From Carpediemonas membranifera BICM (lineage: Eukaryota; Protista; Fornicata), in assembly GCA_019828565.1 (NCBI GenBank), contig JAHDYR010000009.1, positions 62,001 to 126,000 on the forward strand: DNA of 64,000 nucleotides. Direction: 5' to 3'. Position 1 is the stretch's first letter. Each line of letters starts with the position of its first letter. This document shows, piece after piece, positions 26,068 to 55,357 of the stretch. The notes under the pieces were generated by a model. It was not told the DNA's origin and ran no database searches. It worked only from the letters and a program-made list of their open reading frames with translations. Made by a program: the position numbers and the translations under genes.

Positions 26068-26501
26068 TGGCATGTCGTTTTACTGATGTATTTTTATGAA
26101 TCTAAAGCTCATGTCTTGAGTCGACTTACAGGGCGGGACGCCTGAAATAGCGAAGCAGAGGGTGCGATTCAGTGTGTCGGCTAACGTGTGTGGTTGGCAT
26201 GTTGTGTCTGTGCCGTCGACGATGTTCATTATTGCGGGGCGAGTACCCTGCTTCCACGCCGTCTGCATCGGAAGCACATGTTCTCCCTGCGACAATTCAC
26301 GTTCGGTATCGTCGAGCTTCTTGAGGGTAGGTTGGGTGGCTCGTATTCAGTCGACAGCGAGCAGTTTACGGTTATTGAGCTTGATGAACTGAATTTATCT
26401 TGTGTGCACTTTATGCTCCACTACACTTGATGAATGTCGCCACAATGGACTGATGTGAACAGGGTGCAGTTTATCTCACACTACATTCTCCTCCAGAGGA
26501 A

Positions 26502-30814: not shown

Positions 30815-30863
30815 TGTGCCGAATCAAGGCAAGAACTGGTGAAGTGGTTTAAACTGACAAAAC

Positions 30864-32234: not shown

Positions 32235-35200
32235 TGCAGTGGGTCTTACCCAATGTTACATAGGATTACCATTTCATAGATTTATATAGTATTGACCATA
32301 TTCACCACATCATGGGTTTTCTTATATTAAACAATCTTTCCCTAGCCATAAGGCTACATTAGTACTAATCCCACCAACATGGTATACGGGAAGGCCAAAG
32401 CGCCGATACTAAAGGGCACGTCCGTGGCTGAATTAGTCACGTTCGTGGAAGCGCTCCAAGATTATCGAGCACTCGGCGGAAAACAGCGCTCAGACCGCCT
32501 AATAGACAGCTGCGTCCGTGACTACGTTGACGGAGTACTCGGCACGGACGACAACGATCCTCCCGTGGCGCTCATCAAGACCAAGACTACACGCCGGCGC
32601 GAACAAGACATCGCTTGTGTCAAGCGTCTCGGCAAGGCCTTTAGACCACGCCACGAGGTAGCAAGGCTTGAATACTTCCGCTTGAACGCCACATCCTTCA
32701 CGCCTAGCGAGGTGGTACGCATCAACAAGCGCTTTCAGACATTGCTGGCTATTCTGCAACCCGAGTCATCACAGGAGACACTGTGTAAGACGTACGCCCG
32801 CTGCTTCAAGCAGGGAACAGGCAGAACTATGTACCGCATTCAAGAGTTGATCGAAGATTCCACTCTGAGTGATGCCATGCCTCAGGTACTCGCCATTAGC
32901 ACCGAGCTGCGGGACGGCGAAGAGCTGAGAGAAGCGTACCTAGGAGACGGACAGAAGCACCCCAAGAGCATTCACCCGACAGGCGGCCATCCTAGCGGTA
33001 ACAGAAAGAGAGCAGGCCGCAACGGCCATCCTTATCGCCAGCCGCTGCCGTCTGAGGAGGGAAGCAACAAGACGCTGAACCGGGATAAGACAGAGCGTAA
33101 GCCCCATCCCGGTAGCACTGACAAGAAGCGCGACTACACCTGCTGGAACTGCGGCGGCAAGCACGCATGGCACAAGTGCCCCAAGCCGAAGCACACGTGC
33201 TCGATCTGCAAGAAGACTGGTCACCTGGAGAGATATTGTCGGGATAAATCTCCGCAATATTCTCTCTCTATCAGTGCAGATCAGTCCAAGTCCAAGATCA
33301 ACCTACCACTCGTTCCGGTTTCAGTAGGCAAGCAGAAGCTGACAGCGTTATTAGACTCGGGAGCTAACGTGTCAAGCATCCACCCTCGCCACGCAGCCAA
33401 GCTCGAGGTCATCTCCACCACGCAGGAGCGTGTCGCAACAGCAGGCGGCGAGAAACAGTCACAGGGTCGAGTCAACGCTACGATTAAGCTGCAACCATCA
33501 TCGTTCACCCCGCGCACTTGTACATTTAACGCCGAGCTACTTCTACTCGACACCGACTTCGACCTGATCCTAGGATACCCCCATATGGTTGAGTTGGGTA
33601 TTCTCCCTCAGGCTGAGTGGAACAAGGAGGGTAGCGACGAGCTGGACATTCCGTCGCCCGCCAAGTTCGACGCTGCCGTCTACCAGTTGAACCCCACTAC
33701 GAGCGATACACAGGCCAAGATTCTCAAGGAGTTCAGCGCAGTGTTCGAAGATCGCAACGAGCCAAGCAAGCTCGAACCGTACGACTTGATCCTGAAGAGT
33801 GACAGGGTCGTGAACGCGCGACCATACTACATCCCCCCGGCGAAGGTAGCCGTCGTCAAGGAGCACATTGACGCTCTCCTGGCGAAGAGATTTATCCGTG
33901 CCTGTCAATCGCCTTACGCTTCGCCCGCGATGACAGTACCCAAGAAAGGGGGTAAGTCCCGATTCGTAGTTGACTTCAGACAAATTAACGACATCACCGA
34001 ACCTTTCAACTACCCCATACCTCGTATTGACGAGGTTATCTCCCCAGCTAGCGGGGAAGAAGGTCTTCGCAACCCTCGACCTCTCCGCCGGTTACCACCA
34101 AGTCGAGCTGACCGAGCGCTGCCGCCAGTACACCGCATTTACTACGGCTCTGGGGCAGTACGAGTACTGTCGGATGCCCTTTGGGCTACGCAATGCTGGA
34201 GCCCATTTCCAGCGGGCTATGGAGTCCGCCTTCCGGGGGCTGGTCGGCACAGCCTGTTATATATACATTGACGACATCATCATCTTCGGGGCAAGCGAAG
34301 AGGAATATCTCCAGAATCTCCGCAAGGTCCTCCTTCGCGCACGCGAGACAAAGTTACAGCTCAATAGGGAGAAGTGCCAGTTTGGCCGTGCCGAGGTCGA
34401 GTTCCTAGGTTGGGTAATCTCCGAGGGGCAGAAACACATCGCCCCCCGACCGGGTAGCCGACATTGCAGAGCTCCAGTTGCCCAAGAGCGTCCGTGGGAT
34501 GCAGGGCTTAGTAGGCTTTCTGAACTATTTCAGAGATCACGTGGACCGTTTCGCCGAGATCGCCCTCCCCTTGACTGAGGCAATGGCCGGGCGCAGGCCT
34601 ATCGGCCAGCCTGAACAGGACGCAGCGCTGAAGAAGATCAAGGATGCTCTCACATCGGCGGACGCACTCGCCATCTTCGACGCGACTAAGGAGCACACTA
34701 TTATGACCGATGCCTCAGGGCTCGGCTACGGTGCAGTACTCCTCCAAGAGGGTAGGCCAGTATGCTATATGAGTAAGGCCTTTAATGAGGTGCAGTCGAG
34801 ATGGTCCACCAGTGAGAAGGAGACGTACGCCATTATAGCTGCCGTGCAACGCTGGCGCAAGTTCCTCAGTTGGGGCCATTTCACAATCCTGACCGACCAC
34901 AGGAACCTCCTGTTCATGTTCCGGAGCGTTAACGCCAAGGTCAAGCGATGGGCTGACACCCTGTCCGACTTAGACTTCGGTATTGAGCATGTTGCAGGTT
35001 TAGACAACGCCGGAGCCGACGGACTATCGAGAGTTTTCACCGTACGCTCCCAGGCGACCACTGATCAGATTAAGAAGGCACACGAGATGGCAGGCGCTCA
35101 TTTCTCGAGAAGACAGACAATCGACAGACTGAGAGCCGACGGGTTGAGCGTATCCCGCTCAGCTGTGGACGAGTTCATCTCTCATTGCCCCACGTGCCAA

Positions 35201-35550
35201 GTGCTAGAACGACCACCCGAGCAGACTGTGGCCGGGTTACATACGGCTGTAGAGACCCCGTTCAAACGCGTAGCGATCGACACTATGGGGCCATTCCCAA
35301 CGCGGGACGGTATGACGCACATTACGGTCATGGTCGACATGTGCTCACGGTGGACCGAGCTGGTTGCCGTCTCCGGGACCACAGCCGAAGCAGCAGCTGA
35401 CGCATTCGTCAACAACTGGGTACTGCGCTTCGGGTGCCCAGAGGTGTTACAGTCCGATGGAGGGCCAGAGTTTAACAACAAGCTATTCCAACGGTTGTCC
35501 AAGGAGTTGGGCTTTGATACGCACATCACTACGGCCCACCATCCACAGTC
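32235..35550 (+). mobile_element. Gypsy element D, 3'-truncated; 5' LTR 32235-32358; gag-pol from 32379
   Basis: 124-bp TG..CA LTR; palindrome ATTAGTACTAAT 32358-32369; two CCHC knuckles, LDSG, YIDD, RNase H; integrase cut after HHPQS. Confidence 0.9.
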
Positions 35551-36624
35551 CAGACCTTACAACCGCTACGGGCTCAACAGTCAACGATCAGGAGCGCCAG
35601 CCCGATTCCAGCGTGGTTCCGGCAACCGTCGTCGGCGATTCGCGTCCGTCTCGCCGTGCTAGAGGCAAGCGCCGTATCGGCGTCCGTGATCGAGTTCTCC
35701 CGCCGGCAGTCACGGGCGCGGACGTGGTGTTCGAGCCTCCCCGCATTGATCGCGCCACACGGCTGCGGGGTGAGCTCGATCACGTCATCTCGACGGTCAC
35801 GGCGACGTTATCGACATTCTCATCGCATCTAGAGCTGTCAGTGCAGCCGTTCCTCGATGTGTTGATGAGCGGTGCGCTTAACCAGGCATCGCTGACCTCC
35901 GTTCAGCGCCTCGACGGTGGCGTCATCGCTCTGTCTGGGGCAGTCGATGACTACTATCTGCTTGTCGGCTTCCGCAAGTACTTCGATCTTGGCTCCGGTG
36001 TCAGCGACCGGGAGATCATGAACCAGGTATTCAACGGTCGCCGTGCCGGCGATATCCGCCGGGAGGTCCTGGATGAGGCGGCACGCCTTCTTGCCGTTGG
36101 GGTCGACACGGCACGTAGCCACGTCCGCCGGCTCTATCTTCTTACGCATCATGTTCCGTATTATGCAGTGCTACAGCACGCGATCTGGAGCCGGGTGCTG
36201 CAGGGCCGGCAGTGCCTGTATCGATTTGCCCATGACTGCTACGCCCTTGCCTGCGCCGAGGAGCTGCCGACCCTCAGCCTCCCCCCGGTAGGTACCCCGG
36301 TTTCTTCGTCTTACACAGGATATGACCCGCTTTCAGGTCTACGAGCGCGACCGGTATTATCGCGTGCTGGCTGTGCGTGGTCACTGGTGGCTGTTCGTTG
36401 AGCAGGCCTACCGTGGTCGCGCTGGCTCCTTCTTGCTCCTTGTCGCCTACGACGGGTTCCCTGAAGCAAGTCTGACGCCGGTTAACGCAGACCTTGTCCG
36501 CGTGGCTGTGGTCAACCAGTACCTCAGGGCTCATTCCGAGCTCTGGGACGTTCTGCCTGAGTCCCTGCAGGTAGAGTTGGAAGAAGTGGTGACCAGTGAC
36601 GAGGAGTCTGCCGGTGACGAGTAA
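35551..36624 (+). CDS. Antisense accessory gene of D' (5'-truncated; one frameshift near 36285) with C-terminal chromodomain-like module
   Basis: Two overlapping ORFs; the C-terminus aligns by eye with the 59351-60679 product. Confidence 0.7.
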
Positions 36625-36686
36625 ATGTTCTGATGATCTTGGTTAGCGCCTTGATAGTCCGTTATTTACACGGCTATGTACAAGGG

Positions 36687-39600
36687 CTATCCGTCTGTAT
36701 TGTTCGCCAGGAAGATGTCGAGAGCTGCGCAGTCCTTAACGTTCTTATATGGTTCCCACGTGGCTTCTTCGTCCTCAAATCCGGCCCAGTGCACGAGGTA
36801 CTTCTTCTGCGACATGGTACCTGACCCGCGTGCTGCTGAAATGCGGTCGACCAACCACTCGTCCCTGCTAGTTGCAGCGAGTTGCTGGATCTGGTCGTCA
36901 GTTAGTGTACCGGGGTTGAACCTTCGCACTCGTGCGGCATCGACCTTGATGGTCTTACCATTCGTGGGTGACTCTGCCATGTCTTGGACTTCATATGCCA
37001 CGGTGACGCCTGATTGCTTGATGCTCTTAACGCGCCTCATCGGGCCTCTCCACCCTGGTGATAGTTTGTCAGGTGGGCGAGAGGGGTACTTGACCAAGAC
37101 GTAACGACTCAGGATCTCCGTACGCGACGAGACGGCCTTCGACCACGCGTCCTCCTTCATCGCTTGGATGCGAGCCTTCGCCAGCTGAATTGCCGCGTCG
37201 GCGGCTGCCCGGTGTGACTGCTTGGCGCTCGCTGACGCTTGCTTGGTAACGTATATTGAGCTAGGCACGGTGAGGTTATATCCCAGGACGATCTCAGCCG
37301 GTGATAGGCGGGTTGGGACTCGCGGCGTGGCGTTGATGATAAAGCTCGCGACAGGCAGGTGATGTATCCAGTTAGAGTCTCTTATGTGGAACTTGCGTGC
37401 CTTCAAGATGCGTAACACCTCCTTGTTGGCTCGCTCCACCATCCCGTTTGACTGTGGATGGTGGGCCGTAGTGATGTGCGTATCAAAGCCCAACTCCTTG
37501 GACAACCGTTGGAATAGCTTGTTGTTAAACTCTGGCCCTCCATCGGACTGTAACACCTCTGGGCACCCGAAGCGCAGTACCCAGTTGTTGACGAATGCGT
37601 CAGCTGCTGCTTCGGCTGTGGTCCCGGAGACGGCAACCAGCTCGGTCCACCGTGAGCACATGTCGACCATGACCGTAATGTGCGTCATACCGTCCCGCGT
37701 TGGGAATGGCCCCATAGTGTCGATCGCTACGCGTTTGAACGGGGTCTCTACAGCCGTATGTAACCCGGCCACAGTCTGCTCGGGTGGTCGTTCTAGCACT
37801 TGGCACGTGGGGCAATGAGAGATGAACTCGTCCACAGCTGAGCGGGATACGCTCAACCCGTCGGCTCTCAGTCTGTCGATTGTCTGTCTTCTCGAGAAAT
37901 GAGCGCCTGCCATCTCGTGTGCCTTCTTAATCTGATCAGTGGTCGCCTGGGAGCGTACGGTGAAAACTCTCGATAGTCCGTCGGCTCCGGCGTTGTCTAA
38001 ACCTGCAACGTGCTCAATACCGAAGTCTAAGTCGGACAGGGTGTCAGCCCATCGCTTGACCTTGGCGTTAACGCTCCGGAACATGAACAGGAGGTTCCTG
38101 TGGTCGGTCAGGATTGTGAAATGGCCCCAACTGAGGAACTTGCGCCAGCGTTGCACGGCAGCTATAATGGCGTACGCCTCCTTCTCACTGGTGGACCATC
38201 TCGACTGCACCTCATTAAAGGCCTTACTCATATAGCATACTGGCCTACCCTCTTGGAGGAGTACTGCACCGTAGCCGAGCCCTGAGGCATCGGTCATAAT
38301 AGTGTGCTCCTTAGTCGCGTCGAAGATGGCGAGTGCGTCCGCCGATGTGAGAGCATCCTTGATCTTCTTCAGCGCTGCGTCCTGTTCAGGCTGGCCGATA
38401 GGCCTGCGCCCGGCCATTGCCTCAGTCAAGGGGAGGGCGATCTCGGCGAAACGGTCCACGTGATCTCTGAAATAGTTCAGAAAGCCTACTAAGCCCTGCA
38501 TCCCACGGACGCTCTTGGGCAACTGGAGCTCTGCAATGTCGGCTACCCGGTCGGGGGCGATGTGTTTCTGCCCCTCGGAGATTACCCAACCTAGGAACTC
38601 GACCTCGGCACGGCCAAACTGGCACTTCTCCCTATTGAGCTGTAACTTTGTCTCGCGTGCGCGAAGGAGGACCTTGCGGAGATTCTGGAGATATTCCTCT
38701 TCGCTTGCCCCGAAGATGATGATGTCGTCAATGTATATATAACAGGCTGTGCCGACCAGCCCCCGGAAGGCGGACTCCATAGCCCGCTGGAAATGGGCTC
38801 CAGCATTGCGTAGCCCAAAGGGCATCCGACAGTACTCGTACTGCCCCAGAGCCGTAGTAAATGCGGTGTACTGGCGGCAGCGCTCGGTCAGCTCGACTTG
38901 GTGGTAACCGGCGGAGAGGTCGAGGGTTGCGAAGACCTTCTTCCCCGCTAGCTGGGAGATAACCTCGTCAATACGAGGTATGGGGTAGTTGAAAGGTTCG
39001 GTGATGTCGTTAATTTGTCTGAAGTCAACTACGAATCGGGACTTACCCCCTTTCTTGGGTACTGTCATCGCGGGCGAAGCGTAAGGCGATTGACAGGCAC
39101 GGATAAATCTCTTCGCCAGGAGAGCGTCAATGTGCTCCTTGACGACGGCTACCTTCGCCGGGGGGATGTAGTATGGTCGCGCGTTCACGACCCTGTCACT
39201 CTTCAGGATCAAGTCGTACGGTTCGAGCTTGCTTGGCTCGTTGCGATCTTCGAACACTGCGCTGAACTCCTTGAGAATCTTGGCCTGTGTATCGCTCGTA
39301 GTGGGGTTCAACTGGTAGACGGCAGCGTCGAACTTGGCGGGCGACGGAATGTCCAGCTCGTCGCTACCCTCCTTGTTCCACTCAGCCTGAGGGAGAATAC
39401 CCAACTCAACCATATGGGGGTATCCTAGGATCAGGTCGAAGTCGGTGTCGAGTAGAAGTAGCTCGGCGTTAAATGTACAAGTGCGCGGGGTGAACGATGA
39501 TGGTTGCAGCTTAATCGTAGCGTTGACTCGACCCTGTGACTGTTTCTCGCCGCCTGCTGTTGCGACACGCTCCTGCGTGGTGGAGATGACCTCGAGCTTG

Positions 39601-40617
39601 GCTGCGTGGCGAGGGTGGATGCTTGACACGTTAGCTCCCGAGTCTAATAACGCTGTCAGCTTCTGCTTGCCTACTGAAACCGGAACGAGTGGTAGGTTGA
39701 TCTTGGACTTGGACTGATCTGCACTGATAGAGAGAGAATATTGCGGAGATTTATCCCGACAATATCTCTCCAGGTGACCAGTCTTCTTGCAGATCGAGCA
39801 CGTGTGCTTCGGCTTGGGGCACTTGTGCCATGCGTGCTTGCCGCCGCAGTTCCAGCAGGTGTAGTCGCGCTTCTTGTCAGTGCTACCGGGATGGGGCTTA
39901 CGCTCTGTCTTATCCCGGTTCAGCGTCTTGTTGCTTCCCTCCTCAGACGGCAGCGGCTGGCGATAAGGATGGCCGTTGCGGCCTGCTCTCTTCTGTTACC
40001 GCTAGGATGGCCGCCTGTCGGGTGAATGCTCTTGGGGTGCTTCTGTCCGTCTCCTAGGTACGCTTCTCTCAGCTCTTCGCCGTCCCGCAGCTCGGTGCTA
40101 ATGGCGAGTACCTGAGGCATGGCATCACTCAGAGTGGAATCTTCGATCAACTCTTGAATGCGGTACATAGTTCTGCCTGTTCCCTGCTTGAAGCAGCGGC
40201 GTACGTCTTACACAGTGTCTCCTGTGATGACTCGGGTTGCAGAATAGCCAGCAATGTCTGAAAGCGCTTGTTGATGCGTACCACCTCGCTAGGCGTGAAG
40301 GATGTGGCGTTCAAGCGGAAGTATTCAAGCCTTGCTACCTCGTGGCGTGGTCTAAAGGCCTTGCCGAGACGCTTGACACAAGCGATGTCTTGTTCGCGCC
40401 GGCGTGTAGTCTTGGTCTTGATGAGCGCCACGGGAGGATCGTTGTCGTCCGTGCCGAGTACTCCGTCAACGTAGTCACGGACGCAGCTGTCTATTAGGCG
40501 GTCTGAGCGCTGTTTTCCGCCGAGTGCTCGATAATCTTGGAGCGCTTCCACGAACGTGACTAATTCAGCCACGGACGTGCCCTTTAGTATCGGCGCTTTG
40601 GCCTTCCCGTATACCAT
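36687..40617 (-). CDS. D' gag-pol (Gag-PR-RT-RH-IN-chromodomain); two 1-bp deletions in gag relative to D
   Basis: Intact pol with YIDD, TDAS, DDE and YLVHWAGFEDEEATWEP. Confidence 0.9.
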
Positions 40618-40761
40618 GTTGGTGGGATTAGTACTAATGTAGCCTTATGGCTAGGGAAAGATTGTTTAATATAAGAAAACCCATGATGTGGTGAATATGG
40701 TCAATACTATATAAATCTATGAAATGGTAATCCTATGTAACATTGGGTAAGACCCACTGCA

Positions 40762-43700
40762 ACGGTCTGAGGGAATCCGTAGTGGCCGGCGAACTGGATG
40801 AATGCGCGGCAGGCAGACTCGGAGGAAGTTGAAGGGACAGCAACTAGCTCTGTAAAGCGTGAGAAGTTGTCAACCGTGACGATGATAAACTTGTTACCAA
40901 AGTCATCCTCCGGGAAGGGACCCATAGTGTCGATGGAGACGGCCACGAACGGGTCAGAGGAGAACGTAGGACGCAGGGTAGAAGTCGTCTTCTTGGCTGT
41001 CTCGCGGACCTTCTGACAGATGGGGCATGAGGCAATAAAGCCCTTGATGTCATCCAGCATGTTGGTCCATTCGATGCCGCGGAGCTTGAGGCGCTCCATG
41101 GTGGTCACGGCGCCCATATGGCCGGCGACGGGACCATGCACGGACTCAATGTCCACATGATGGTCAGACAGGGAAGTGACAGCCTTGAGACAGCGAGAGA
41201 GGACATCTGCGGCCGCGTTGTCGAGGCCGGGGATGTGATGAATCACGAAGACATACTCTTGGAGACGGAGGCTCCAGCGCACGACCTTCGGGGTCTCACT
41301 GCGCGACATGTAGATCAAGTTCTTATGATCGGTCTGGACCTCGAAGAACTGGCCTCGGATGAACGGATCGAACTTGGTGATGGCGAAGAAGATTCCATAT
41401 GCTTCTTGCTCGATCGTGGCCCAAGCTGACTCAGTCATCGTGAAGCGGCGCGAGACGAAGGCGACAGGTGCCTCCCTTGCCGGAGACGGGATCTTGCTGC
41501 GCGAGGAGAGCGCCACAGCCGAGCGAAGAAGCGTCGGTCTTGATCACCAGGGGCTTCGAGTAGTCTGGGAAAGATAGGAGGGGTGCCTGGACGATAGCGC
41601 GCTTGACGGTGTCCCAAGCAGTCTGTTCGGACTCACCCCACTCGAAAACGGTCTTGGAGCCGCAGAGGTCGTACAGGGGAGCCATGATACGGGCGAAATC
41701 TGCGACATGGTCACGGTAATAGTTCGCGAGACCGCAGAAGCTTCGCAGCTCGGAGGGGTTTGACGGAACGGTCATTGAGCCGAGGGCTTCCTTGCGCCAG
41801 CTGGAGATGCTGATGCCCTGTGAGCAGACCGTGTGGCCGACGAACTCGAGCTCGGTGCGGAGGAAGACGCACTTGCTCAGCTTCAGGCGTAAGTTGTGGG
41901 CGCGGACGAGTTCGAAGACCTGATGCAGAAGGGAGTTGTGGCCCTCGATCGTAGACGCGTGTACGATGACATCATCAAGGTAGCACTCGACCCCGCGGCC
42001 CAAGAGTGGAGCTAAGATCCGCATCATGCCTCGCTGGAAGTAGGAAGGCGCGTTCTTGAGACCGAAGGGGACTCTAACGAACTCGTACAGGCCGTTGTGC
42101 GTGGCAAATGCAGTCCGAGGAACAGCTGTTGCGTCGAGGGGGAACTGGTGGTAGCCACTGCGCAGGTCAAGCGTGGTGAAGTACTTGCTGCCATTCAGGC
42201 GAGACAAGATGGACTTAATGTTCTGCAGGGGGAATCGGAAGTCGCGGCTGACTGAGTTGAGGAGGCGGTAGTCTACGACCATCCTATGTTCACCGTTCGT
42301 CTTTGGCACGACGAAGCAAGGGGCGGAGTAAGCCGACTCCGATAGGCGGATGATGCCAGCCTCAAGGAGGGCCTCGACCTCTCGATCGATGACCTCAGTC
42401 ATGGCCGGGGAGAGCCGGCGAGGGGGAACGTGGGTCGGAGTTTCGTCCGTGACGGCGATCTCCATAGGCTGAACCTTGGCAGGCTCACGAGGGATGGGAC
42501 CGAAGATGTCTTCGAACTCGCGAGCGAGGGCTGCGACGTTTTCATCGAGCTCGATCTGGCCATCTTCGTCAAGGGGTGTAACCTCGCCGAGGTCCTGAGG
42601 CTCAGTCGCGGGAGGATCCAGTAGGTTGAACGTTTGGATCACGTCGAACCCAAGGATGAGGGGCTCACCGGTGTTGAGGACGTGGGCGCTGATAGTACCT
42701 CCGACTGAGTGGGGAGACCTGTTGACCTTGATGTCAAGGAGCGTGCGATGGGCAGACGTGGCGATGCCATTGGCCGTGCTTATCTTGAGCTCATCAGGGA
42801 TCATGACCAGGCCCAGAGACTTGGCCAGCACTGGGCTGATGAAGGATGAGGAGGCGCCTGTGTCGACCAGGGCGTCGACGCGGTCGGTGCTCTGGGGAGC
42901 AGGGGAGCCGACGGGCGCGAAGGCTCGTACGTTGGTGCTGAGGCGCATGACTGGTCCGCTTGTTGCCATCTTCAGAGAGATGGGCGTCGTCCGGCGGCCC
43001 GTAGCGAAGAAGCCGGGCTTGGACTTGTTGGGGCAGTCAGGCCTAAGGTGGCCGGAGAGGCCGCATCCATGGCAGACAGGCTGCGGCTTGGCAGGGGTAC
43101 CGGCAGGCTTATGGTTGTCTGGTTTGTTGGATGGGAAGTGTGGAGCAGGCGCTGCGGTAGCGTGAGGACGAGTGGGGTGGAAGCTCGGAGGCGGACGTGT
43201 GGCCTGAGGGCGCGGGACCTCGGGCTGACCGAACTCGGCGATGGTGCGCTTGGCCTCAGTCAAGGTCTCGACCTCTTGGAAGGCGGCACGCTTGGCGTCG
43301 GCGAGCGTCTCAGGTTCGGAGGCCTTGACCCGGCGGCGCAGTGAATCTGGGGACAGTCCGCGGATGAAAGTGCGGCGTAGTGTCTTCTCGTCGGGGAGGT
43401 AAGTGGAACAGAGGTCCTCGACGCGGTCGAACCTGTCGAGGTAGGCGAGCAGAGCGCTGTTGCTGGCCGTCGTGGAGGACATGGCGGTTGCTTCCAGCTT
43501 AGACAGAACGGCCTGAGTGCTCTTGGGAGCGAAGAAAGCGGAGTAGATCGCCGACAGGACGTTTTCATCTGGAAGGTCGTCAAAGTTGTCAATGCGAAGG
43601 CGGATCAGGCGTAAAACACGGCTGGAAATGAGCATACGGACAGATAGTGCTCTGTCGTCGGGAACTTGGGCGGAATAGGCCTCGAACTTGTCGTTGAAGC

Positions 43701-43872
43701 TGCAGAAGGCCGTTTCGGAACGAATGTCGTTGAGAAAAGGGGCTGAAATCGTTTGATAGTCCATGGCGGTGAGTAAGCTTACTGTGGCCAAATAAAGAGA
43801 ACTAATGACGAAGTGAGGTTTATTCGAAACCCGATCAAGGGCAAAAATGGTTATAAATAAAATTGCCCAACA
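40762..43872 (-). mobile_element. Gypsy element E, inserted in gag of B, truncated in integrase by D'; 5' LTR 43783-43872; gag-pol from 43764
   Basis: 90-bp TG..CA segment interrupts the B gag ORF; palindrome AGTAAGCTTACT 43772-43783; CCHC, VDTG, YLDD; frameshift near 41475. Only one LTR is visible, so its bounds are inferred. Confidence 0.82.
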
Positions 43873-44051
43873 GGCGTAGTGGACACAACGGAGGATGAAA
43901 GTTGCTGACGAAGGGCATCTATCTGCCCCATCAAGTAATCGACGGACTTGGTGGGCGCAGAACTCTCGATGACAGTGACGAGATCCTCCTTAACATGAGT
44001 GGATGCAACATCGTCAACAACAGGTACCTCAATTTCCGATAATGTCGACAT
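43873..44051 (-). pseudogene. Element B gag N-terminal fragment
   Basis: ATG immediately follows the B 5' LTR, inside the palindrome; the ORF is cut by the E LTR. Confidence 0.7.
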
Positions 44052-44263
44052 TGTGCCGAATCAAGGCAAGAACTGGTGAAGTGGTTTAAACTGACAAAAC
44101 TCACTGGAGCAACGAGACAGGAAACGCCACAGTGAACTTTCGTGTTGATGAAGAGTCGGAATTGGGCAGAACCTTCAGCTCCGCCGTGGGGTCATGAATG
44201 GTGGCTAAGAAAGCCAATGCGGGTGCGTTCGATAGAACCTTCCCAAGTGTCAGCACGTTCTTG

Positions 44264-47200
44264 TGTGGTGTGACTCAGGTCACAACAGGTATTATCCTGC
44301 ACATTTGGTGCAGGATTATGGCAGTATTCTCTCTAAAGTCTTTATTGGTTCCCTTGTGTCCAGGACTGACCACAATGATATCATTTCTTCCGGAGGAGAT
44401 GAGCTCAACGGTCCTGGCGCAGGAGAATCAATATAAGCAACATCAATTGACATTTTCACCAGAACCAATTTCTTCCGTTAGCGCAATGCAAATGTCTCCG
44501 CGGTGTCGACAGTTCAACTGAAATTCGCAAGCAACAACAAGTCTAGAGCGTTTAGTTCAACAAGACCATCAACTTCCACCAATGCACTATAGCATACAAG
44601 CAAACAACAGGCCAATACCAGTAACCAAGCTTCAATAAGCTCCAACAAACGATACAGCACCGCAATACCAGCTCTGGAGCGCCAATCAAGCTCCTTCAGG
44701 ACAATCGACCGAGACCAGCAACGAGACCAGTGGCCAGGCCAAGCACAAGCCGATACAGTGCAGATAGCACCAGGAATAAGCACCACCAAAGCCGCCAAAA
44801 GGCAAAACAAACCGAAACCACGCCGAGGAGCCAGCCACTTCCACGTCCAGCCAAATCGAACACCCCGAGACAGTGCGAGAAGAAGCCAAGAAGGGGCAGT
44901 GACCCCAGTAGACTCACTGACAGACCCACGCACGACTTTGACCAACGTAGACCTCCAGAATCAACGTCCCCAACCATCATCCAGAGCTACCTAGAGAGTA
45001 GCAGCTTGGCCACATGCGCCCAGAGCAAGTCATACATCATTCGGGTCATCCAGCAGACCATGAGCAAGCGTGGCACAGGGCCAATGGCCCAAGCCAGACA
45101 GGCAACTACCATCATCGACGATGAAAAACCGAAAGAGGTAACGACCCATCTGGGGACACCAAGCTCGGTTCCTACAGTCGTGGGAGCGATCCACACTATT
45201 TATATGTCTACATGAGGCCATGTATACCTTCCTAACAAATGCTCAGCAGAGCATGTGGAGCACGTAACTGCTAGCAGTGGGTCCTAGACGGCCAGTTATA
45301 TCCTTCTATCAGTGCTGAAACAGCACCCGTATTGAGCAGCTTCAAGGTTTGCTCTCCAGTTATCCCCGAACATGTGCGAACTCGCCAGCTTGCAGGTCCC
45401 TTCCACGTACAGCAACACGACATGAACCAATAGAGCTAGCACGCCACCGTCTCCGCAATTCCCTGTCAGGGGCAACCAGCGTCATAGAGCAACGATAAGC
45501 TCGACCGCTGCTCATCCACATCCTCAGTACGCGACAGCCTGGGCAGACACCCCATCTGCTGTCAACTGTATCGCGCTTGCCATCGTTCACCCCATGGCGC
45601 GAGCATCTCCATTTGAGCAACAATGGCTCGCACTTTTGTCAAGGCTAGCTGTGCTACCCGCCAAACTCAGGTAAGGTAATTACTTAGCTTCCACTTATCA
45701 TGACCGGCATCCTTGCTTTGAAGTCAATTTAGTAGACACGAGACCAACAGTCATCAGACAACAACGCGGCGACAACACAAAGTACTTCAGAGCCGCGGAG
45801 GGGCAGCGTTACCGCGCATAGCAGCTCTTCAACGAGTTTAGATAGTAGTTTCACGGGTCCCTTCCTCTGTGAGACTTGTACCGAAACCACGACCAGTCTA
45901 GTATGGTCGTATTATCACCTCATCCCGTGACGAGCAACTCACGGGTATCGCGAGCATGTTGCAGCTCGAACACATGTCGGCCCGTCCTCCAGCGATGCGC
46001 CCATCCTCTCAGTACAACACCTTCAGGCCAATAGAGGCGAGCAGCCTCTGGCACCCTAACACTTAGTCATCAATGGTACCTTCGGGCAGACCCGGAGATC
46101 ATCCGTCATGTCATGCTGCAGAGTACTCATATCGTATCTAACTCATGTCGTCACGTCGCCACATGATATCTCTACTAGGAGACAGAGCTATGGAGGAGGC
46201 TGATAACCTTCTTGACGAGCGGTAGACCCAGCAGTCACCCTCGAAGACGTCCGCAGTATCAACACTAAGCCAGATAAGCCCTCTCGTACTGACATACGAG
46301 GCCAATACCAGGACTAAAAGTCCACCCACGGTGCGTGTTCGCACCGGTTACCCATAAGTCTCCGCCACAGGAGGGCGGATACACCTTCGACGCCTGCTGA
46401 CTAGCAGTGGAACTAAGAGCTTGGCAGCGCCTTGCCTCACGAACTTAACCTTCCTTTCACATCTGTGGGATCTTCAGGCACCACCCAGTCGGGGTGACAG
46501 TGCCCTACAGCCTCTTCAATCAACCTTGCATGTTACTCGGTGTCACAGGACACTCGAGAGAGGTCGTAATGACTCTCATTCGCGCCAGCGAGAGACGAAC
46601 CAAGCGCGTTTAGCACAATACTTGCGACCCGTCAGGTCAGCCAGCAACTAGAGACTCAGCCAGATGGAGGGTAGTGTCGATGCATCTCAACCCGTGGTTC
46701 ACCCACTTCCTAGAGTCTCCACTTATCGTGGATTGTATCGTCGTTTACACTAAGCAAACGTTGCAGAGTTTCCGTATGCCCCTGAGACAGGTCTGTCTCC
46801 CGAGCACTCTGCTACCCATGTCCCGGACACTAGACAGCCAGCCTAGGTCGACAGTCATCAGCGGATGACCTAATCAACCGCGTATACTTATGCTACGTAG
46901 GAGCCGTGCCCGCGAGCAAGGGTTAGCCCAAGCAGTACACACCCGATGTTTAACCATCCGCCTCGGCCGAGCGAGTGAGTCCACCCGCAAGTACGAGAGA
47001 CATCCCCAGCCGCCTGAGCAATGTCCAGCTACCGTCAATTGACAGCATCATGTAGTGATGCGACACACGATCGAGTGGCCAATGAGTCGTCGCTCATCTC
47101 GAAGCGGACAGTTCTAGTGCCGAATAGCCGTCACAGCAGTCAAGCCTTCGCAATGTCAGCCAGGCTTGTGACATAAGCTGTGCCGACAGTCATCTACTAG

Positions 47201-49166
47201 TGCAAGAAGCACTTCATAGTATCCTGAGTCAAGCGTACTCAGCCTAACACCCAACCTGTACCGGAAGGTAGGTTACCCATGTTCAGTCAGCACCGGTGCG
47301 CTTTAACGTTACATGTACATTTATAACTCGTCGAAACTACGTTCGTAGTTCATCCAATCGGTCTCACCAGGAGGTTAATCCTCGGTGGAGACGGCCAGTG
47401 AGCTGTGTCGAACAACGGAGCATCTTGCATGCTCTGAGTAGGCGCAGAGGCCAGGTAGGTTTTGTATAGCACATGAGTGTCTACAAGCCTTTGAGCTGTC
47501 GTTCGACATCTCTATTTTGCACCGCCTTGGCAGTTAGCCAGTATAGGGGTGTCGCTTACTTACATAGGGATCCCAACAACTTGATATATATCGCGATCCA
47601 GACCAGTAGGTCTGTGGACGGGTGGTAGTGGTCAGCTGAGCGTTGATCCACGGTGCGGTGAGTCTGAGGGAGTGCACGCCCGACGACAACACGGCTGTGT
47701 GTGACACCTTGGGACCGCCATCTAAGGTTCGGGTAATGGATGCTTTGCCGACGGGCTCTGCACACCTGAGCGTCCGGAAAGGCCATGTGGCAAGTACGGT
47801 TGTTACGGAGCATGTTCTGAGTCAGCTAGCGAGCATGTATGCTCCTAGCACACGAGTGTCGTTCAACACTCTTCTATTAAGCTATCAGGTCTGAGCCAGG
47901 CCGATTAACGGCGCTCGCTGACAGCGATTAGTCATGATTACACACCAGCGAGTTAGAGCTGAGCCCAGTCGGGTGCTCATCGCTGTGCTGTTGTCTTGAA
48001 TGGTTGTGAGCCTAGGCCATCGTTCGATAGGTAAGCCCGACTCATTCATAAGCCGGAATACACGGCAGGCAGTCTATGATAGACTATGATGGAACATGAG
48101 CCGCAACGAGTCAGTGGGCCAGGGTTGAAACCCGCAGTCCGACACGTCATCCCGGAGATCGGTTGTGTTCGGAGCAGTACCGTCGTTTGAATGGTATATG
48201 TCCAAATGGTGGACGGGTTAGACCGGCCCCAAGACCACAGTTGGAGGCGATGGGGTGGCCAAGCTTACGGTTAGAGGCTTGACCGATGAGACCCTGCATC
48301 GAGGACCGAGTTGTCCTATAGATGAGTGTCAGTAATAGAGTAGCCTGCTACCTTAAGCTTTTGCTTAAGTGTGGTTGGATACGTCCCAAGAGACAGTCCC
48401 TTTTCAAAGACGTACAGCGTCATGCCATACGTGGCTATTATAGAGCCGTCAGAACAAACGCGCCTGACCAGTCTTTCGACAGGTTTGGTCGCTTCGTCTG
48501 GACCTTGAGCCCGACACGAAATGTTGCGCATGCACAGCGCAGTCATCTGTCGCCACAAATCGAACTAGTGTGGCTTTCTCCGGCTTCACCTTTACGTGAG
48601 CGCCGGGTGGTTCTCTTCCCAAACCCCTTTGAGCGCTTCAGACAGCTCAGATTTTACTCAGCAATGACCTTTTTTCTTCCGGTTTCGGGGGTTTTTTAGT
48701 CTTCACCAGGTGGTTTCTCTTTCTGATTCGATCAGTTTCTTCGCCGCCGCAGCAACTTCCCAATCATTGCCTACATGTGTTACGGCCGTCACTTAGACGA
48801 CCGTGGAGGGGCAGTAACATCTACAACCCAGCCACCACATCAGTTCCTTCATCGCAGCAAGTACATCGGACAGCTTAGAGCCGAACGGTCGGCCGTGCGG
48901 TCCACATGTGGTGTCGGAATATCTTTTTGATATCTCAACATTATGACATCGAGCAACGACAGGTTCCGTCACATGTCGCGTCACCAGACGCAACAGCTCA
49001 CCTTACATACTTTTGTCAAGGCTCATCTCTATCAAGATGACCCTTGGAGGGGCAGTGTGGTGTGACTCAGGTCACAACAGGTATTATCCTGCACATTTGG
49101 TGCAGGATTATGGCAGTATTCTCTCTAAAGTCTTTATTGGTTCCCTTGTGTCCAGGACTGACCACA
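44264..49166 (+). mobile_element. Non-autonomous LTR element C (decayed internal region), inserted in gag of A
   Basis: Identical 111-bp LTRs 44264-44374 and 49056-49166; TSD CTTG; PPT GGAGGGGCAG; palindrome AATGATATCATT 44374-44385; no long ORF. Confidence 0.9.
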
Positions 49167-49342
49167 CTTGTTATCACTGAGATTGTGATTTTTCAGTAGG
49201 AGGATCCAGTGATTCCATGCAGCATAATCCCGTTTGTTAGGGGGATCCTTCAAAGCTGATATGTCCATGTTCTTAATAGCAGTAGAAGCTTCTGTCGCCA
49301 CAATGGACTGATGTGAACAGGGTGCAGTTTATCTCACACTAC

Positions 49343-50533
49343 ATGAACAACTTCGCGGTTGCAGGAATTGACGGATATGGAGGCCTAGTATTGGACAAAA
49401 ACGACAATGAGACGATAATCCACAAGAGTTTTCACGTGAATCTCTACGACGGGGAAGACAACCGAACTGAGCACCGGAATCTTGCCGCGATTGCAACCAC
49501 ACACCGTCTAGTTATCGCTAACGAGGATCCAGGAAAGGTCGTTTACTACGAGGTTCCACTTTCGTTCGTCACAAGCGTCACCAGCAAGGGCCGCGCTCTC
49601 TTCAGGAAGCACGGCCGCGTCTATCTCACAATGACAACACGCACCGGCCACCAACCTGCATTTCCAGATACCCGCAAGGATCAGCTGATGATTACTCTCC
49701 ACGACCAGGATGAGGCCAAGCTCGCCGACAAGATCTCGAAGGCCCTTGAGGAAAAGGCATGGACGCTGGCCGAGAGGACCCGCAAGGAACAGCGGGCGGC
49801 ATATGACCGGGTGTATGGCATCGGAGGAATCAAGAACAGACAGCAGCAACAGGCCAAGAGCGGCGACGCCCTCCTGGGGGCCTTCGACGACCTGACTACG
49901 CTCATGAAAGAAGCCCAGAGATTGGCTGATATGGCCAAGACGCTTCAAACCCAGCAGGCTGCGGCCCAGCAGTCCGACGGCAATGACCGGGACAAGGAGG
50001 AGCTCGCCTCCATGTTGGCCACGGCCGGTCTGGTGTCGCCCGTCACCAAGGACGTCTCGCGGGACTCCTACTACACAGACCTTGCCCGACAGCTGGCAGG
50101 GTTCCTCGCCGGGCCGCTCAAGGAGGCGAAGGGCATGCTGCAGGTCGTGGACGCGTACGCCATGTACAACCGCGCCAGGGGCACCGCGTTGGTGACCTCG
50201 GACGACTTCATGGCCGTGCTGAGGCTGTTCCCCGAGCTGGGGATCCCCATTGAGACTGTCCGACTCAGCAGCGGGGTCAGCGTCGTTCAGGACAGTGCAG
50301 TCGGCACCACTGCGTTGTTGGAGGCGGTAGAAGGGTATCTCGCGAGATTCGCTGGCAGCATGGAAGACTTGTCGACGCTTACGCCCGTTACAGCTGCGGC
50401 GTTGGCCGAGGAGGCGGGTGTGACTCCCATCCTCGCCAAGGAGGCGCTGCTGCTGGCTGAGAAGAAGGGGCTAGTTTGTAGGGACGACCATGTGGGTGTG
50501 GCGTTCTACTCGAACTTCATGCGCGGCGGGTGA
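49343..50533 (+). CDS. VPS36: ESCRT-II subunit VPS36
   Basis: GLUE-like N-terminus (NLYDG, TTHRL), GIGGI, AFDDLTTLM, SPVTK, YNRARGTALV, GLVCRDD. Confidence 0.92.
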   Translation: MNNFAVAGIDGYGGLVLDKNDNETIIHKSFHVNLYDGEDNRTEHRNLAAIATTHRLVIANEDPGKVVYYEVPLSFVTSVTSKGRALFRKHGRVYLTMTTRTGHQPAFPDTRKDQLMITLHDQDEAKLADKISKALEEKAWTLAERTRKEQRAAYDRVYGIGGIKNRQQQQAKSGDALLGAFDDLTTLMKEAQRLADMAKTLQTQQAAAQQSDGNDRDKEELASMLATAGLVSPVTKDVSRDSYYTDLARQLAGFLAGPLKEAKGMLQVVDAYAMYNRARGTALVTSDDFMAVLRLFPELGIPIETVRLSSGVSVVQDSAVGTTALLEAVEGYLARFAGSMEDLSTLTPVTAAALAEEAGVTPILAKEALLLAEKKGLVCRDDHVGVAFYSNFMRGG

Positions 50534-50994
50534 GGTTGTTGTAGCATAAAGCGGGTCGCTCGAGCTGAACACCAGCGCCTCTGGTGTACTCTCACAGCAA
50601 CACTCCCGTTGACAGCAAACCCATTAATACATAAAGTGCTGACGCCGTCAGAAGCAGAGGAACTGTGGCCTTCGAACAGGTACTTGCCATACAGGGGCGA
50701 GCTTTTTCTTCTGGGCGAGCACTTTCTCTGGACTGCAGGCACAATACGAATAGTTCCTAGTGCTAGAAGATAAGGTTGAGGGACACGCCAGCGGGTCTGG
50801 CAGTCCCGGCATGATGGCCGTCAGGGTGACATCTGGACACATTGGATTAAGACCTTGATTCACGTCGAATATGAAGAGTCACTTGTAGCCAACGACTCTC
50901 ATACCATAGCAGCGGTGTGGCTGCCCGACCTGGGCTGTTAGACAAATCCGCAGTTTAATACCTACTGATTTGCCGACGACTATTCCAGCACCAA

Positions 50995-52798
50995 ATGAAG
51001 CCAGCCTTCCTTATTTGTGTGATCGCGGTCATCGGTGTTATCACTGCGAAGAGCTCTGTCGTTGTTGAACATCCCGTAGGAACCCCTGTTGTCCACGGCT
51101 ACCACTCGGACCAGCTCCTCGTCGGCTACGACAACGGGCTCGTCGCCTCATTCAATCCCCACGAAGGGAACCTTAGTTTGTCCGATACACATACTTCTTA
51201 CTGCAGAATGGCGCCTCCGCCTCTCCGAGAAATCAATCGACGCCCTCGACGCCATTATGCCTGATCGCAACTACCTAGCCACCGTAGGAGACCAGGAGTA
51301 CATCATTTCCCGCTTCGGCCACCTTTTGAACGTCTTCCCGGCTGGCACCACCGACCGTACCGGGCTGAAGCAGACTTACCGCCATCTCACGACGACGCCC
51401 TCCCACATCACTACCGTCGAGGGTGGCCTCGCCCTCCTGAGAGACAGCGATGACAGCAAGATCTTTGAGATCCCCACGATCGCCGTTTCTACCGATGCCC
51501 GCGTGCTCTCCCCCGACACCCACCACGCCATCCTCTGGGAGCCCGCCCAGCTCTGCACTATCACCCCTTCGGCCAGGTGTGTTGGCCTATCAGCTCCCGT
51601 CGATGACGTTAAGATCATGGGCAACTTTATCGTCACCGTGAGCTTCGGCACTCCCGCCACCGTCGTCGTCTACGACTTCGACCTGACCCAGCTCGACTCC
51701 AAGGACGTTCCCCACGCCCATGCGGTGTCCTTCGACGTGGCCCACCACACCCTCGCCCTCGTCTCAACCCAGGGCGGCTATGGATTCACCCTGACATCTG
51801 CCGGCACCCTCACCGCCTCTGCCCAGCATATGCCTGCCTTCGTGCTCTACGACACGGACGCCACGACCCTCACCGGCTACAGGTCCACCAACGGGTCACC
51901 CCGCGAGATATTCTCCCGTAATGTCACCGACCTCGCAGCCACTAAGGAGGCCTCGTCCTGCACGATCATTCCCACCAAGACACACGCTGCCACTGACCCC
52001 GTGTCGTTTGTGGCCGTATGCCACGACGACGCGGTCCAGGCCACCCTCCTCGTCTTCCGGGCAGATGTTCCCAAGGGAAGACTCGTCGCCAGAGTCGCCC
52101 TGCCCGGTCTGACTGATTCTGTGGAGTCGATCGCCCAACTCGTGATCTCAGACCCACTCGCAGTCAGTGCCACGCACTTTAAGGGCTTCTTTATGGCTGT
52201 GTCGTACATCGATACGTCTGCCCGCACCAGGGGCCGCCCCACCACCCTGGTCCTGGCCCTGCCCGCTAACGGCGACCCTGTACAAATCGGGGAACCTATG
52301 ACCAGGAAGTACGTGCTCCCTGGTCCTCTCACGGCGATTACCGCCGCGGACCACGGAGCCGCCAGTGCCATGGCCGGCCACCATGTCGGCAAGGTCGGGT
52401 TCATCGCCGGCGGGCAGACTGGCCACGTCTCCTTTGTATCGGAAGACGAGCTGCTGACTGACTTCGGATTCAACCCGCCCCGCGGTGCCAAGATCGGCAA
52501 GAACTATAAGCTCGGCGACAAGCCTCTCGAGGCCACAGCCTTCAAGTTCGACCCTGCAACCTTTATCACCGAGCACAAGGCGTACTCGCGTCCGCAAAGC
52601 CTCTCTATCGGCCGCTCCGACTCGATCGATCACTTTGTCGTGGGTGCCCTGGGCGAGGCCAGTGTGGCCCTGATTGATGTCGGGCCGACCCACCATGCGA
52701 TGGGTGTGGTGTCCAAGGAGGACTCCCTCGTACTGGGGACCGTGGCGATGGGGGCGGTACTCATGCTCGCTGGCGTGTTCGTATGGTCGCGGAGATAA
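50995..52798 (+). CDS. EMC1: EMC1-like type I membrane protein (590 aa); intron 51176-51206
   Basis: Signal peptide; VASFNPHEGNLKWR after removing the 31-nt intron GTTTGT..CTGCAG; EMC1-like pre-TM region and C-terminal TM. Confidence 0.6.
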
Positions 52799-52911
52799 AT
52801 ATTTTGTTTTCAACGGGGACATGCAGTTTGGTGGGCGTTATTGGTTCTCGGCGCGGTTTGGGGCAGGGCCCTGGGCCAGACGTGGGACAGTCGAATGGGT
52901 CGCAACACAAA

Positions 52912-53664
52912 ATGCACCTCACCGAACTCGTCCTGCCGATCCTGTGGGTTACATGCTTCATCACACCGCTTTACTTCACCCGAGTATCCAGAGTAGGCGA
53001 TCCGTACGTCCCAAAGGTCGCCAGACACCGCATCGTGCTCGCAGGCCTTGGTGTGGTGATAAGTCTCACTATACAAGCCATATTACAACATTACACCGGA
53101 GATAACATCGTTTATAGCCTCCATCTCGCCTTTAACCCCCGTGCGATCATCGTCACTGCCGCTGTGATCCTCATCGCTTACCTCCCTTCAATCATCACCA
53201 CCCTCACCGCCGGACAGCACTTCAGCCTCTCCATCAGCGCCATCCCCACTGCCCCGGGCCTCAGGGTCGTCCTATTCGCCCCCGTGTTCGAGGAGATCGT
53301 CTACCGAGCCCAGTGCATCGGGCCCTACATCATCGCCGGGGAGACACCGTGGGGAGCCATAGTGTATGCAAGCGCGGTGTTCGCAGTCTCACACGCCCAT
53401 CACGTGGTTAACCTCAGGCTCCGCGGCTTCCCGTGGTCGCACTGTGTCTCCGTCGCCGCGTTCACCGCAGCATACACCGGACTGTTTGGCCTGTTCACGA
53501 CAATGGTGCTGGTCAAGACACAGTCGACCCTGGCCTGTATCGTGGCCCACTCCCTCTGCAACTACCTCGGGCTGCCCGACCTGAGTGTGTTCAGAGGCTG
53601 GTGGGTGCTGGGGCAGCTGGTGGCGGTGGCGGTGAGCACCTATCTGTGTGTTCACGTCATGTAA
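52912..53664 (+). CDS. RCE1: CAAX prenyl protease 2
   Basis: APVFEEIVYR, FAVSHAHH, HSLCNYLGLP. Confidence 0.9.
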   Translation: MHLTELVLPILWVTCFITPLYFTRVSRVGDPYVPKVARHRIVLAGLGVVISLTIQAILQHYTGDNIVYSLHLAFNPRAIIVTAAVILIAYLPSIITTLTAGQHFSLSISAIPTAPGLRVVLFAPVFEEIVYRAQCIGPYIIAGETPWGAIVYASAVFAVSHAHHVVNLRLRGFPWSHCVSVAAFTAAYTGLFGLFTTMVLVKTQSTLACIVAHSLCNYLGLPDLSVFRGWWVLGQLVAVAVSTYLCVHVM

Positions 53665-53851
53665 CGAGAGGTGATGGAAGGGGGCACCGGTCTTTGACCA
53701 ACCACCCACAGCTGACAGACGCACCTGGATGGCCGTAGCCTTAACCTGCGTTCTTCGGATCATCTTGGCTGATGTCCGGTTCTGGTTCGACATTCTTCAG
53801 TAGTTCTGCTGCAGATGACTTTACATCGCCAGTTGTGCCCAAATGGGTTAG

Positions 53852-54211
53852 ATGGGTGATGCTGCCTTCGAGGAGGAGAAGCTGGAGGCATGCCGCATCA
53901 AGTCGCTTGATGGTGACAAGCTTGCAGTTTTCCGACACGATGGGGAGATTATCGACATCAAGCGTCCGAGGAAGTTCAGCAAGATCCACCCCTGTGTTGG
54001 CCACTTCATCCTCTTGGACGTATCAACGATGGAACTCGCACACATCCTGAACGATCGCCAGACCAAGCTCCTGATGAAGAGCGAGCACTGGCCGGCTGAG
54101 TTTGCTCCCGAAGCCTCTGAGGATGAAGAGGCAGACCCATTTGAGGCGGGGAACCCCAACCAGAGGAAGTACGCCGAGGCGCACTCCGACGACGATGACT
54201 CAGACTTCTGA
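53852..54211 (+). CDS. EIF1AD: EIF1AD-like S1/OB-fold protein
   Basis: PRKFSKI...GHFILLD...HWPAEF, acidic tail with NPN. Confidence 0.65.
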   Translation: MGDAAFEEEKLEACRIKSLDGDKLAVFRHDGEIIDIKRPRKFSKIHPCVGHFILLDVSTMELAHILNDRQTKLLMKSEHWPAEFAPEASEDEEADPFEAGNPNQRKYAEAHSDDDDSDF

Positions 54212-55357
54212 GGCCTGCCGCAGGCGATTTGTACACGGTGCTCCCCACCTTTCCTTAATTCATGCCTATTCTCACCGATTTAAAGATACGGCGTGATTAA
54301 ATCTGCAAGGGCAAAACCATGCTGAGGACGCATCAAAAACAAACCATCAACGTCGTATGCCGTGAATAACAACTAATCAACATCAAAACCAATGGAATCC
54401 AGCTTATTGTAGCTGAACACTGCTCCTTCCCCCATGGGTCCGAAGTTTCCAGCCTTTTCAGCGACTACCGCCTTAGTTCGCTTTGAACCGCAGCATCTTC
54501 CGCTGTGCAGGCAACTTCTTCGCCAAATGAGGTACTTTCTCCAAGTATCTGTCAAGTGCTTCGAGTTTGTCTAGCTCCAATGTGAATGGCTCCCACGTGG
54601 CTTCCTCAGGAAGGTACCCTTCCCAAATAACATGCAGTAGCAGCTTCCGTCCCTCGAACTTGTGCTCGTTGATCTCCTCCACCACGTATTCGTCGTCTCG
54701 CTCCGCAGCAACCTGCTTCAGCTGATCGAGCGTCAAGCTTGTCTCGAACACCCTGAGCCTGTCAGCGTGGATGCTGTGGGTCTTCCCGGACGTCAGGTTA
54801 CGGACACGATAAACGTTCGGGGACTTGTCTGGGCCTATGCACCACATCGGCCCGAGCAGAGTAGATCTCCTACCGGAGTTCGACGCCACCAGGACTGCGG
54901 TGTCTTGTAGCTCGATGTGATCGCGACTTGGCGACTCTCCATCACACAGTTGTTGCTGAACCACACGATTAACTTCAATCCTACGCCTAAAGAGCTCCAA
55001 CGAGACTGTATCGTCACTCAACTCGTCAAGCGTCGAGTCTTGCTCCTGGTCGTACAGTACCGTCCACGGGGACATGCCCGTGGTACTATTCTTCGTCGAG
55101 TTAAGGATGAACTGAGCGTGTGGAATCAGTTTCGTCCAGTCACGTGTCTTGCACTCCGTCATCAGGCACTTCAGATGCTTCTTCAGTTCCGCGTTCTGAC
55201 GTTCGACGACGCCTTGCGATGCCGGTCGGTGTCAGCCATTTATATATGAGATACGTATTTGATACGGTCTTGATCCGTCCAGCTCGACACCCTTGTGTCG
55301 AGCTCTCTTTGTAAAGTCTTTTTCCTTAGTGATCACAGTAAGCTTACTTCCAAACTA

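Follow-up and report, generated by a model that had tools for sequence, protein, structure and literature searches.

Palindromes at the primer-binding position of a deep chromovirus clade from Carpediemonas membranifera and other microbes: a candidate for self-priming between genomic RNAs

Reverse transcription of long terminal repeat (LTR) retroelements is primed by a host tRNA or, in Tf1, by the 5' end of the element's own transcript, an 11-nt self-primer that is cut from an RNA duplex by the RNase H of the element. This article describes a nest of LTR retrotransposons, designated A to F, which was recognized by self-comparison in a 64,000-nt stretch of the genome of the fornicate protist Carpediemonas membranifera BICM (assembly GCA_019828565.1, contig JAHDYR010000009.1, positions 62,001 to 126,000; hereafter the window), and in which a palindrome occupies the primer-binding site (PBS) position where the 5' LTR ends. 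The palindrome is interpreted as the PBS of a deep-branching group of Ty3/gypsy chromoviruses which has abandoned tRNA and primes itself in trans, a reading that is given about an even chance of being right. It builds on the observed position, register and covariation of the palindromes and on the absence of other pairing partners. In this recently active clade neither the tRNA nor the Tf1 route appears to be used and the sequences argue for pairing of one copy of the site with another. These elements are a strong candidate for a new mechanism, a variant of non-tRNA (self-) priming in LTR retrotransposons.

The anatomy of the window was established by self-comparison, repeat finding and direct reading of the letters. 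A previous sequence-only reading had reported palindromes at seven 5' LTR/internal junctions, and all of them were found in place, each beginning on the terminal A of the LTR's CA: AGAAGCTTCT in A (49284-49293, minus strand; 10 nt, with the gag-pol ATG 15 nt downstream), AATGTCGACATT in B (44041-44052, minus), AATGATATCATT in C (44374-44385, plus), ATTAGTACTAAT in D (32358-32369, plus; gag ATG at 32379), its counterpart in D' (40627-40638, minus), and AGTAAGCTTACT both in E (43772-43783, minus; ATG 7 nt downstream) and in F (55337-55348, plus). Two amendments concern the strand of element A, which lies on the minus strand and was read accordingly, and the count of families, as D and D' are truncated copies of a single family and should be counted once. 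The palindromes of E and F are identical, yet the two elements occupy distant places in the pol tree. The four 3' LTRs (A, B, C and F) are not followed by a palindrome, and none of the 16 junctions examined in the window and at other loci starts with TGG, both in agreement with the earlier description.

The ends of the LTRs were fixed from the paired LTRs that A, B, C and F have in the window and, for D and E, from LTR-only genomic copies, which in a whole-genome search stop exactly at the first A of the palindrome. In the case of D, 10 such copies cover query positions 177-301 and the palindrome lies at 301-312; in the case of E (query window:43600-43990) the copies begin at positions 182-184 (span 184-273) and the palindrome lies at 173-184. 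The same end was found in 17 of the 19 LTR-only copies listed for the L014 family and in both of those listed for the L007 family, and the register is also shared by loci L031, L035 and L036. Palindromes of at least 10 nt show no overall enrichment in the window (77 seen vs. 67 +/- 8 in shuffles), hence the signal is positional. The probability of a 12-mer palindrome at a fixed site is about 2e-4 at this base composition (own arithmetic), and chance was rejected as the cause.

The spread of the palindromic site was explored with the pol gene of D' (36687-39629, minus; reverse transcriptase (RT)-RNase H-integrase (INT)-chromodomain) as query for homologue searches. The genome survey comprises the 30 genomic loci retrieved in this way and coordinate-only searches. 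These loci include three further families with a 12-nt palindrome after the LTR's CA, 7-9 nt before the gag ATG: ATTAGATCTAAT in L006, ATTAACGTTAAT in L007-L013 and L026 (with a 14-nt variant in L028) and ATTTCTAGAAAT in L014-L021 and L023-L025. Loci L041, which starts inside gag, and L022, L027 and L029, with disrupted 5' ends, were left out as uninformative. Two contigs of another assembly (GCA_002919055.1), with pol sequences 49-56% identical to any in the Carpediemonas genome, carry the palindromes AATAACGTTATT and AGTATTAATACT, and four metagenome elements carry AGTATATATACT, AGTCAATTGACT, AATAAATATTTATT and AATAATATTATT, the last two in elements whose paired LTRs stop at the palindrome's first A. 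The metagenome contigs have a pol identity of 28-32% and a GC content of 36-50%. The L037 contig holds a 16-nt palindrome, maybe 2 nt after a CA, at an LTR end that is not fixed. Two distant chromovirus controls were taken through identical steps: L038 has an ordinary tRNA-type PBS (TT followed by TGGTATC) and L039 a similar initiator methionine (iMet)-like sequence, AGGTATCAGAG, which lacks the initial TGG. In the pol tree, a quick search that places element A on a long branch, a single clade (SH-aLRT 98) unites all palindrome elements, and both controls lie outside. As far as these sequences allow, the palindromic site is a property of a deep chromovirus clade present in this genome and in other microbes.

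The nature of the constraint on the site is evident from covariation. Thirteen 12-mer junctions, representing 13 families, were aligned and scored as a helix (position 1 with 12, 2 with 11, and so on). All 78 mirror cells are Watson-Crick, with no G-U pairs, and in four of the six pairs both partners have changed, involving 26 cells. The score for covariation amounts to 0.90 against 0.16 in shuffles (none of 500 as high) and does not exceed 0.15 with a slid partner column. Positions 1 and 3 and their mirrors (A.T......A.T) are the only invariant ones, the core varies in mirror pairs and all differences between the families of the D clade are of this kind, which bears out the earlier proposal that structure rather than sequence is conserved. 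The edge of the helix is sharp: the C preceding the palindrome and the base that follows it form a pair in 0 of the 13 families, and the latter base is never a G. Self-complementarity extends to the central 4 nt in every family; since a 4-bp hairpin with a tetraloop would not need this, a full-length duplex between two identical strands is favored. Thus, the pairing of two RNAs suggested before is strengthened by the constrained center, the fold-back suggested as its alternative is disfavored, and a hairpin-only fold was rejected.

Four rival explanations were considered, and in order of decreasing weight they take the palindrome as a dimerization or packaging signal, as part of a fold within one molecule, as a protein site on DNA and as the target of a host RNA. 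According to the first, which is unlikely, the palindrome by U5 acts mainly in dimer linkage or packaging and priming proceeds otherwise, for example from a very short primer, from a protein or de novo; to our knowledge, protein or de novo priming has no precedent in LTR elements, which counts against this view. In its favor, covariation reveals a two-molecule duplex and is silent on the 3'-OH, and palindromes in retroviral PBS regions have been tested for roles in dimerization and packaging (mouse mammary tumor virus, MMTV; PMC8096270). However, the LTR boundary coincides with the start of the palindrome to the base in every resolved family, as predicted for an annealed primer, and no alternative candidate PBS occurs in the 1-35 nt that separate the palindromes from the ATG. 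A layout like that of the retroviral dimer initiation site (DIS) was not found in these elements, where the palindrome occupies the PBS position itself and no separate PBS is present. Self-priming within one RNA, either by folding of the transcript's 5' end onto the site (Tf1/sushi) or by a hairpin with a downstream copy (as in the fungal Ty1/Copia element GalEa), is improbable. Such folds are brought to mind by the assignment of these elements to the chromoviruses, the group that contains Tf1, by GalEa, which has the same register together with a downstream partner, and by a short covarying hairpin that in the D clade immediately precedes the terminal ACA. In nine elements, however, the longest complement of the site measures 3-6 nt in the LTR and 4-6 nt within 100 nt downstream, in both cases no better than shuffles, which removes the Tf1-type and the GalEa-type folds and agrees with the earlier remark that no copy of the palindrome is seen inside the LTR; a Tf1-type complement and an equivalent of the GalEa downstream partner CHSeq2 were both rejected on these matches. 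Six full elements have one palindrome copy each and no other match of at least 9 nt, and the few partial matches elsewhere in the elements (7-8 nt) are consistent with chance. Furthermore, neither fold needs a palindrome.

An action of the palindrome on DNA, for instance in binding a dimeric protein or as a promoter or methylation element where gag begins, is less probable again. It would suit the strictly Watson-Crick symmetry and the location 1-35 nt before the ATG, but protein sites conserve sequence and here the core varies freely in mirror pairs with only positions 1 and 3 and their mirrors fixed; the exact overlap with the LTR end would also be left unexplained. The use of a host tRNA fragment or other small RNA as primer, for which the half-tRNA priming of some Copia groups offers a precedent (PMC6317226), is close to refuted. 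No site begins with TGG, a separate host RNA would be required for each of at least 13 different sequences, and the symmetry would have no explanation. In the 24.2-Mb genome, ATTAGTACTAAT occurs 13 times, exactly at the 13 5' junctions of the D family, so that no host gene can give a perfectly matching RNA for D; AGTAAGCTTACT occurs 28 times, including 14 E junctions and three F or F-like junctions, among them that of a third family at C10:197786-201721. None of these 13 and 28 sites overlaps any of the 63 tRNA genes scored, out of 497 candidates, in a comparison with host tRNAs, and the window contains no tRNA gene; a tRNA or half-tRNA primer was rejected.

Self-priming between two genomic RNAs is the preferred reading. 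The U5/internal boundary of LTR elements is set by the position of the 3' end of the minus-strand primer; because this boundary falls on the base with which the palindrome begins, the primer's end must consist of the 3' half of the palindrome. The only complement found for the site is the site itself, which makes the element's own RNA the most likely source: the primer is probably this RNA, perhaps a paired sister copy. In the proposed mechanism the identical palindromes of two co-packaged genomic RNAs would form an antiparallel duplex of 10-16 bp, with calculated energies of -8.6 to -15.5 kcal/mol, and a nuclease, for which the RNase H of RT is the obvious candidate as in Tf1, would cut one of the two strands where the duplex ends on its 3' side. 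The new 3'-OH would then be extended over the U5-R of the partner to give minus-strand strong-stop DNA, and plus-strand strong-stop DNA would copy the primer, whereby each half-site would be rewritten as the mirror of the other. Such rewriting would explain why the symmetry is strictly Watson-Crick, why G-U pairs are absent and why mirror double changes come about easily. Judging from the identical LTR pairs of four elements and from the non-coding element C, which keeps palindrome and purine tract, the site works. The earlier interpretation holds in part, as regards the PBS position and the non-tRNA character of the site, the lack of a partner in the LTR and the conserved symmetry, as attested by position, complement search and covariation. 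A more tentative extension, rated a little short of even, is 'PBS-to-PBS' priming, in which the PBS of one genomic RNA would prime its dimer partner: dimerization, packaging and initiation would be one event that requires no host tRNA, and a private 12-nt code for each family would block cross-priming and renew its symmetry in every cycle.

Several points weigh against self-priming in trans. The dimer, the cut and the RNA-DNA junction are inferred from DNA sequence, and a long self-primer (R-U5-PBS) would require an extra trimming step which is purely hypothetical. The dimer that co-folding yields is a consequence of palindromy as such and carries no independent weight. The total absence of G-U pairs also fits a constraint on DNA. 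In the genomic searches, 11 of the 28 sites of AGTAAGCTTACT could not be inspected and the tRNA comparison covers 63 of 497 candidates. Finally, the sole published parallel, GalEa, has a downstream partner, which suggests a hairpin there.

The elements of the window are assigned to the Ty3/gypsy chromoviruses (Metaviridae) on their sequence features. Pfam matches were obtained in A, D', E and F, taken together to protease (PR), RT, RNase H and integrase, with a C-terminal chromodomain in D' and F, and the pol order RT-RNase H-INT is of Gypsy type, not of Ty1/Copia type (INT before RT). Elements A, B, C and F have 4-bp target site duplications (TSDs), LTR ends are TG..CA, and purine tracts occur in C and F. 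Within each of these four elements the two LTRs are 100% identical, which indicates recent movement.

Element A is bounded by a 5' LTR at 49293-49343 (minus; 51 nt, TG..CA) and a 100% identical 3' LTR at 26435-26485 (minus), with TSD TGAA at 26431-26434 and 49344-49347; its gag-pol open reading frame (ORF) (26502-30827; 1441 aa, RT-RNase H-INT) stops just before the 3' LTR. The LTRs are just 51 nt long despite this apparently intact gag-pol, with little room for U3, R and U5. Element A is split by the insertions of C and B. Element B (5' LTR 44052-44131, minus, 80 nt, a 100% repeat of the 3' LTR at 30815-30894, minus) is flanked by the TSD GTGA and carries E, D and D'. Element C (TSD CTTG) has its 5' LTR at 44264-44374 (plus, 111 nt) and its 3' LTR at 49056-49166 (plus), preceded by the purine tract ggaggggcag. 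Over its 4.9 kb (44264-49166) no ORF longer than 161 aa is present, and the two ORFs tested have no Pfam match; lacking a long ORF, C is probably non-autonomous and mobilized in trans, and it retains LTRs, palindrome and purine tract.

The 5' LTR of D (32235-32358, plus, 124 nt) begins with TGCAGTGGG and is common to the copies L001 and L003; the first 20 nt of D and D', which at first resembled flank, are the start of the LTR according to the genomic copies. D' (5' LTR 40638-40761, minus) is a second, inverted and truncated copy of the same family, 99.8% identical to D over 3.3 kb and joined to it tail to tail near 35550/35551. In this region (32235-40761) both copies are truncated at the 3' end and the outer flanks form no TSD; the structure is either a rearrangement or an assembly join. 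Element E, nested in B, has its 5' LTR at 43783-43872 (minus, 90 nt), with no TSD seen, and neither D nor E has a 3' LTR within the window. Element F (TSD TCGG) comprises a 5' LTR at 55230-55337 (plus, 108 nt), pol at 56301-59321 (plus; PR-RT-RNase H-INT-chromodomain) and a 3' LTR at 61557-61664 (plus) after the purine tract gggggggaag.

Additional features of the LTRs were observed. In D, L006, L014, L018 and B the palindrome is immediately preceded by a short hairpin of 4-5 bp, placed just ahead of the terminal ACA, which covaries from one family to another (TAGCC/GGCTA, CTCC/GGAG, GTCC/GGAC) and is reminiscent of the U5-IR stem beside the PBS of retroviruses and Tf1. C, F, L014 and L018 have a larger hairpin in the middle of the LTR. 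A TCTCTTTGTAAAG-like motif, a possible poly(A) signal, is located 25-35 nt before the LTR end. In L011 (pol-oriented), positions 253-280 hold the adjacent small palindromes ATCATGAT, TGTTAACA and ATATCATGATAT, about 100 nt upstream of an LTR of the L007 family.

Several families, including those of the other assembly, share a conserved ORF of about 300-480 aa that is antisense to pol and located between pol and the 3' LTR. It is found in F (59351-60799, minus), D' (35364-36401, plus), L001, L007, L014, L018, L027, L031 and L032, and its C-terminal block is chromodomain-like by eye (Y.V..V..H....F.LLV.Y.GY). Searches with this ORF returned no Pfam family, no useful Atlas neighbor and two relatives among 1.8 billion representatives.

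Other observations concern the surroundings of the elements. The flank of one copy of the L007 family (L007:198-386) is a repeat with at least 18 genomic copies, and each of the four copies checked (two on C6 and two on C39) is followed, at a distance of 442-445 nt, by a tRNA gene on the same strand; the repeated unit thus contains or targets tRNA genes. The flank of a D copy (L001:188-364) is another repeat (at least 14 copies, 99% identity), from which it follows that D was inserted into another mobile element. On contig C67 (G000:C67:749870-798606), 5' junctions of E recur about every 11 kb (749943, 772242 and 794659, with degraded copies in between), suggesting a tandemly amplified block that contains E. 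Elsewhere in the window, positions 8264-10191 and 10212-12139 form a perfect 1928-bp tandem duplication with a 400-aa ORF in each copy, which is either a very recent gene duplication or an assembly artefact.

Were trans self-priming to be confirmed, it would constitute a third priming route, one that couples genome dimerization to initiation. Annotation tools that seek tRNA PBSs are expected to misjudge such elements. No account of a palindromic PBS in Gypsy elements was found in the literature, the library searched being incomplete, and a tie to the adenine methyltransferase retrotransposons described in a 2026 preprint was rejected, as this source is silent on PBSs.

The elements described here share with Tf1, Tf2 and sushi their chromoviral nature, a tRNA-independent PBS directly after U5 and a small U5 hairpin beside the site, and the 11-nt self-derived primer of that group is similar in length to the present palindromes. 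In contrast, the PBS of Tf1 has its complement in the LTR, in the initial 11 nt of the Tf1 transcript with which it pairs, and is not palindromic. For the Tf1/sushi, Tcn1 and TAR groups, self-priming has been established or predicted (PMC6317226). The DIS of human immunodeficiency virus type 1 (HIV-1), the PAL sequences of Ty1 and the PBS palindromes of MMTV and HIV-2 are likewise self-complementary 5' leader sequences able to pair genomic RNAs; however, they reside in hairpin loops or come about as a side effect of a PBS whose sequence a tRNA dictates, and a tRNA is still the primer. In MMTV the PBS palindromes are dispensable for dimerization (PMC8096270). Closer in kind are the Skipper chromoviruses of dictyostelids, which also lack the TGG and an LTR complement and for which unconventional self-priming is suspected, although their site is a polypyrimidine stretch and not a palindrome (PMC5006619).

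The nearest parallel is found in the fungal GalEa elements of the Ty1/Copia group, which have no PBS and carry instead a 'Conserved Hairpin Site' (Donnart et al., 2017, PMC5445492). As in the present elements, a tRNA-type PBS is absent, the sequence after the LTR becomes a palindrome only if the LTR's last A is counted with it, and variants arise through paired substitutions; the mechanism was left open by the authors, according to whom no known model fits (PMC5445492). The differences lie in the family (Copia, here Gypsy), in the palindrome, which in GalEa is 10 nt long and nearly fixed (two main sequences) whereas here it spans 10-16 nt and is highly diverse, and in the complementary CHSeq2, which lies 12-41 bp downstream and forms a hairpin in GalEa and has no counterpart here. 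If confirmed, priming by pairing of two identical sites would also account for the unexplained 'hairpin site' of GalEa.

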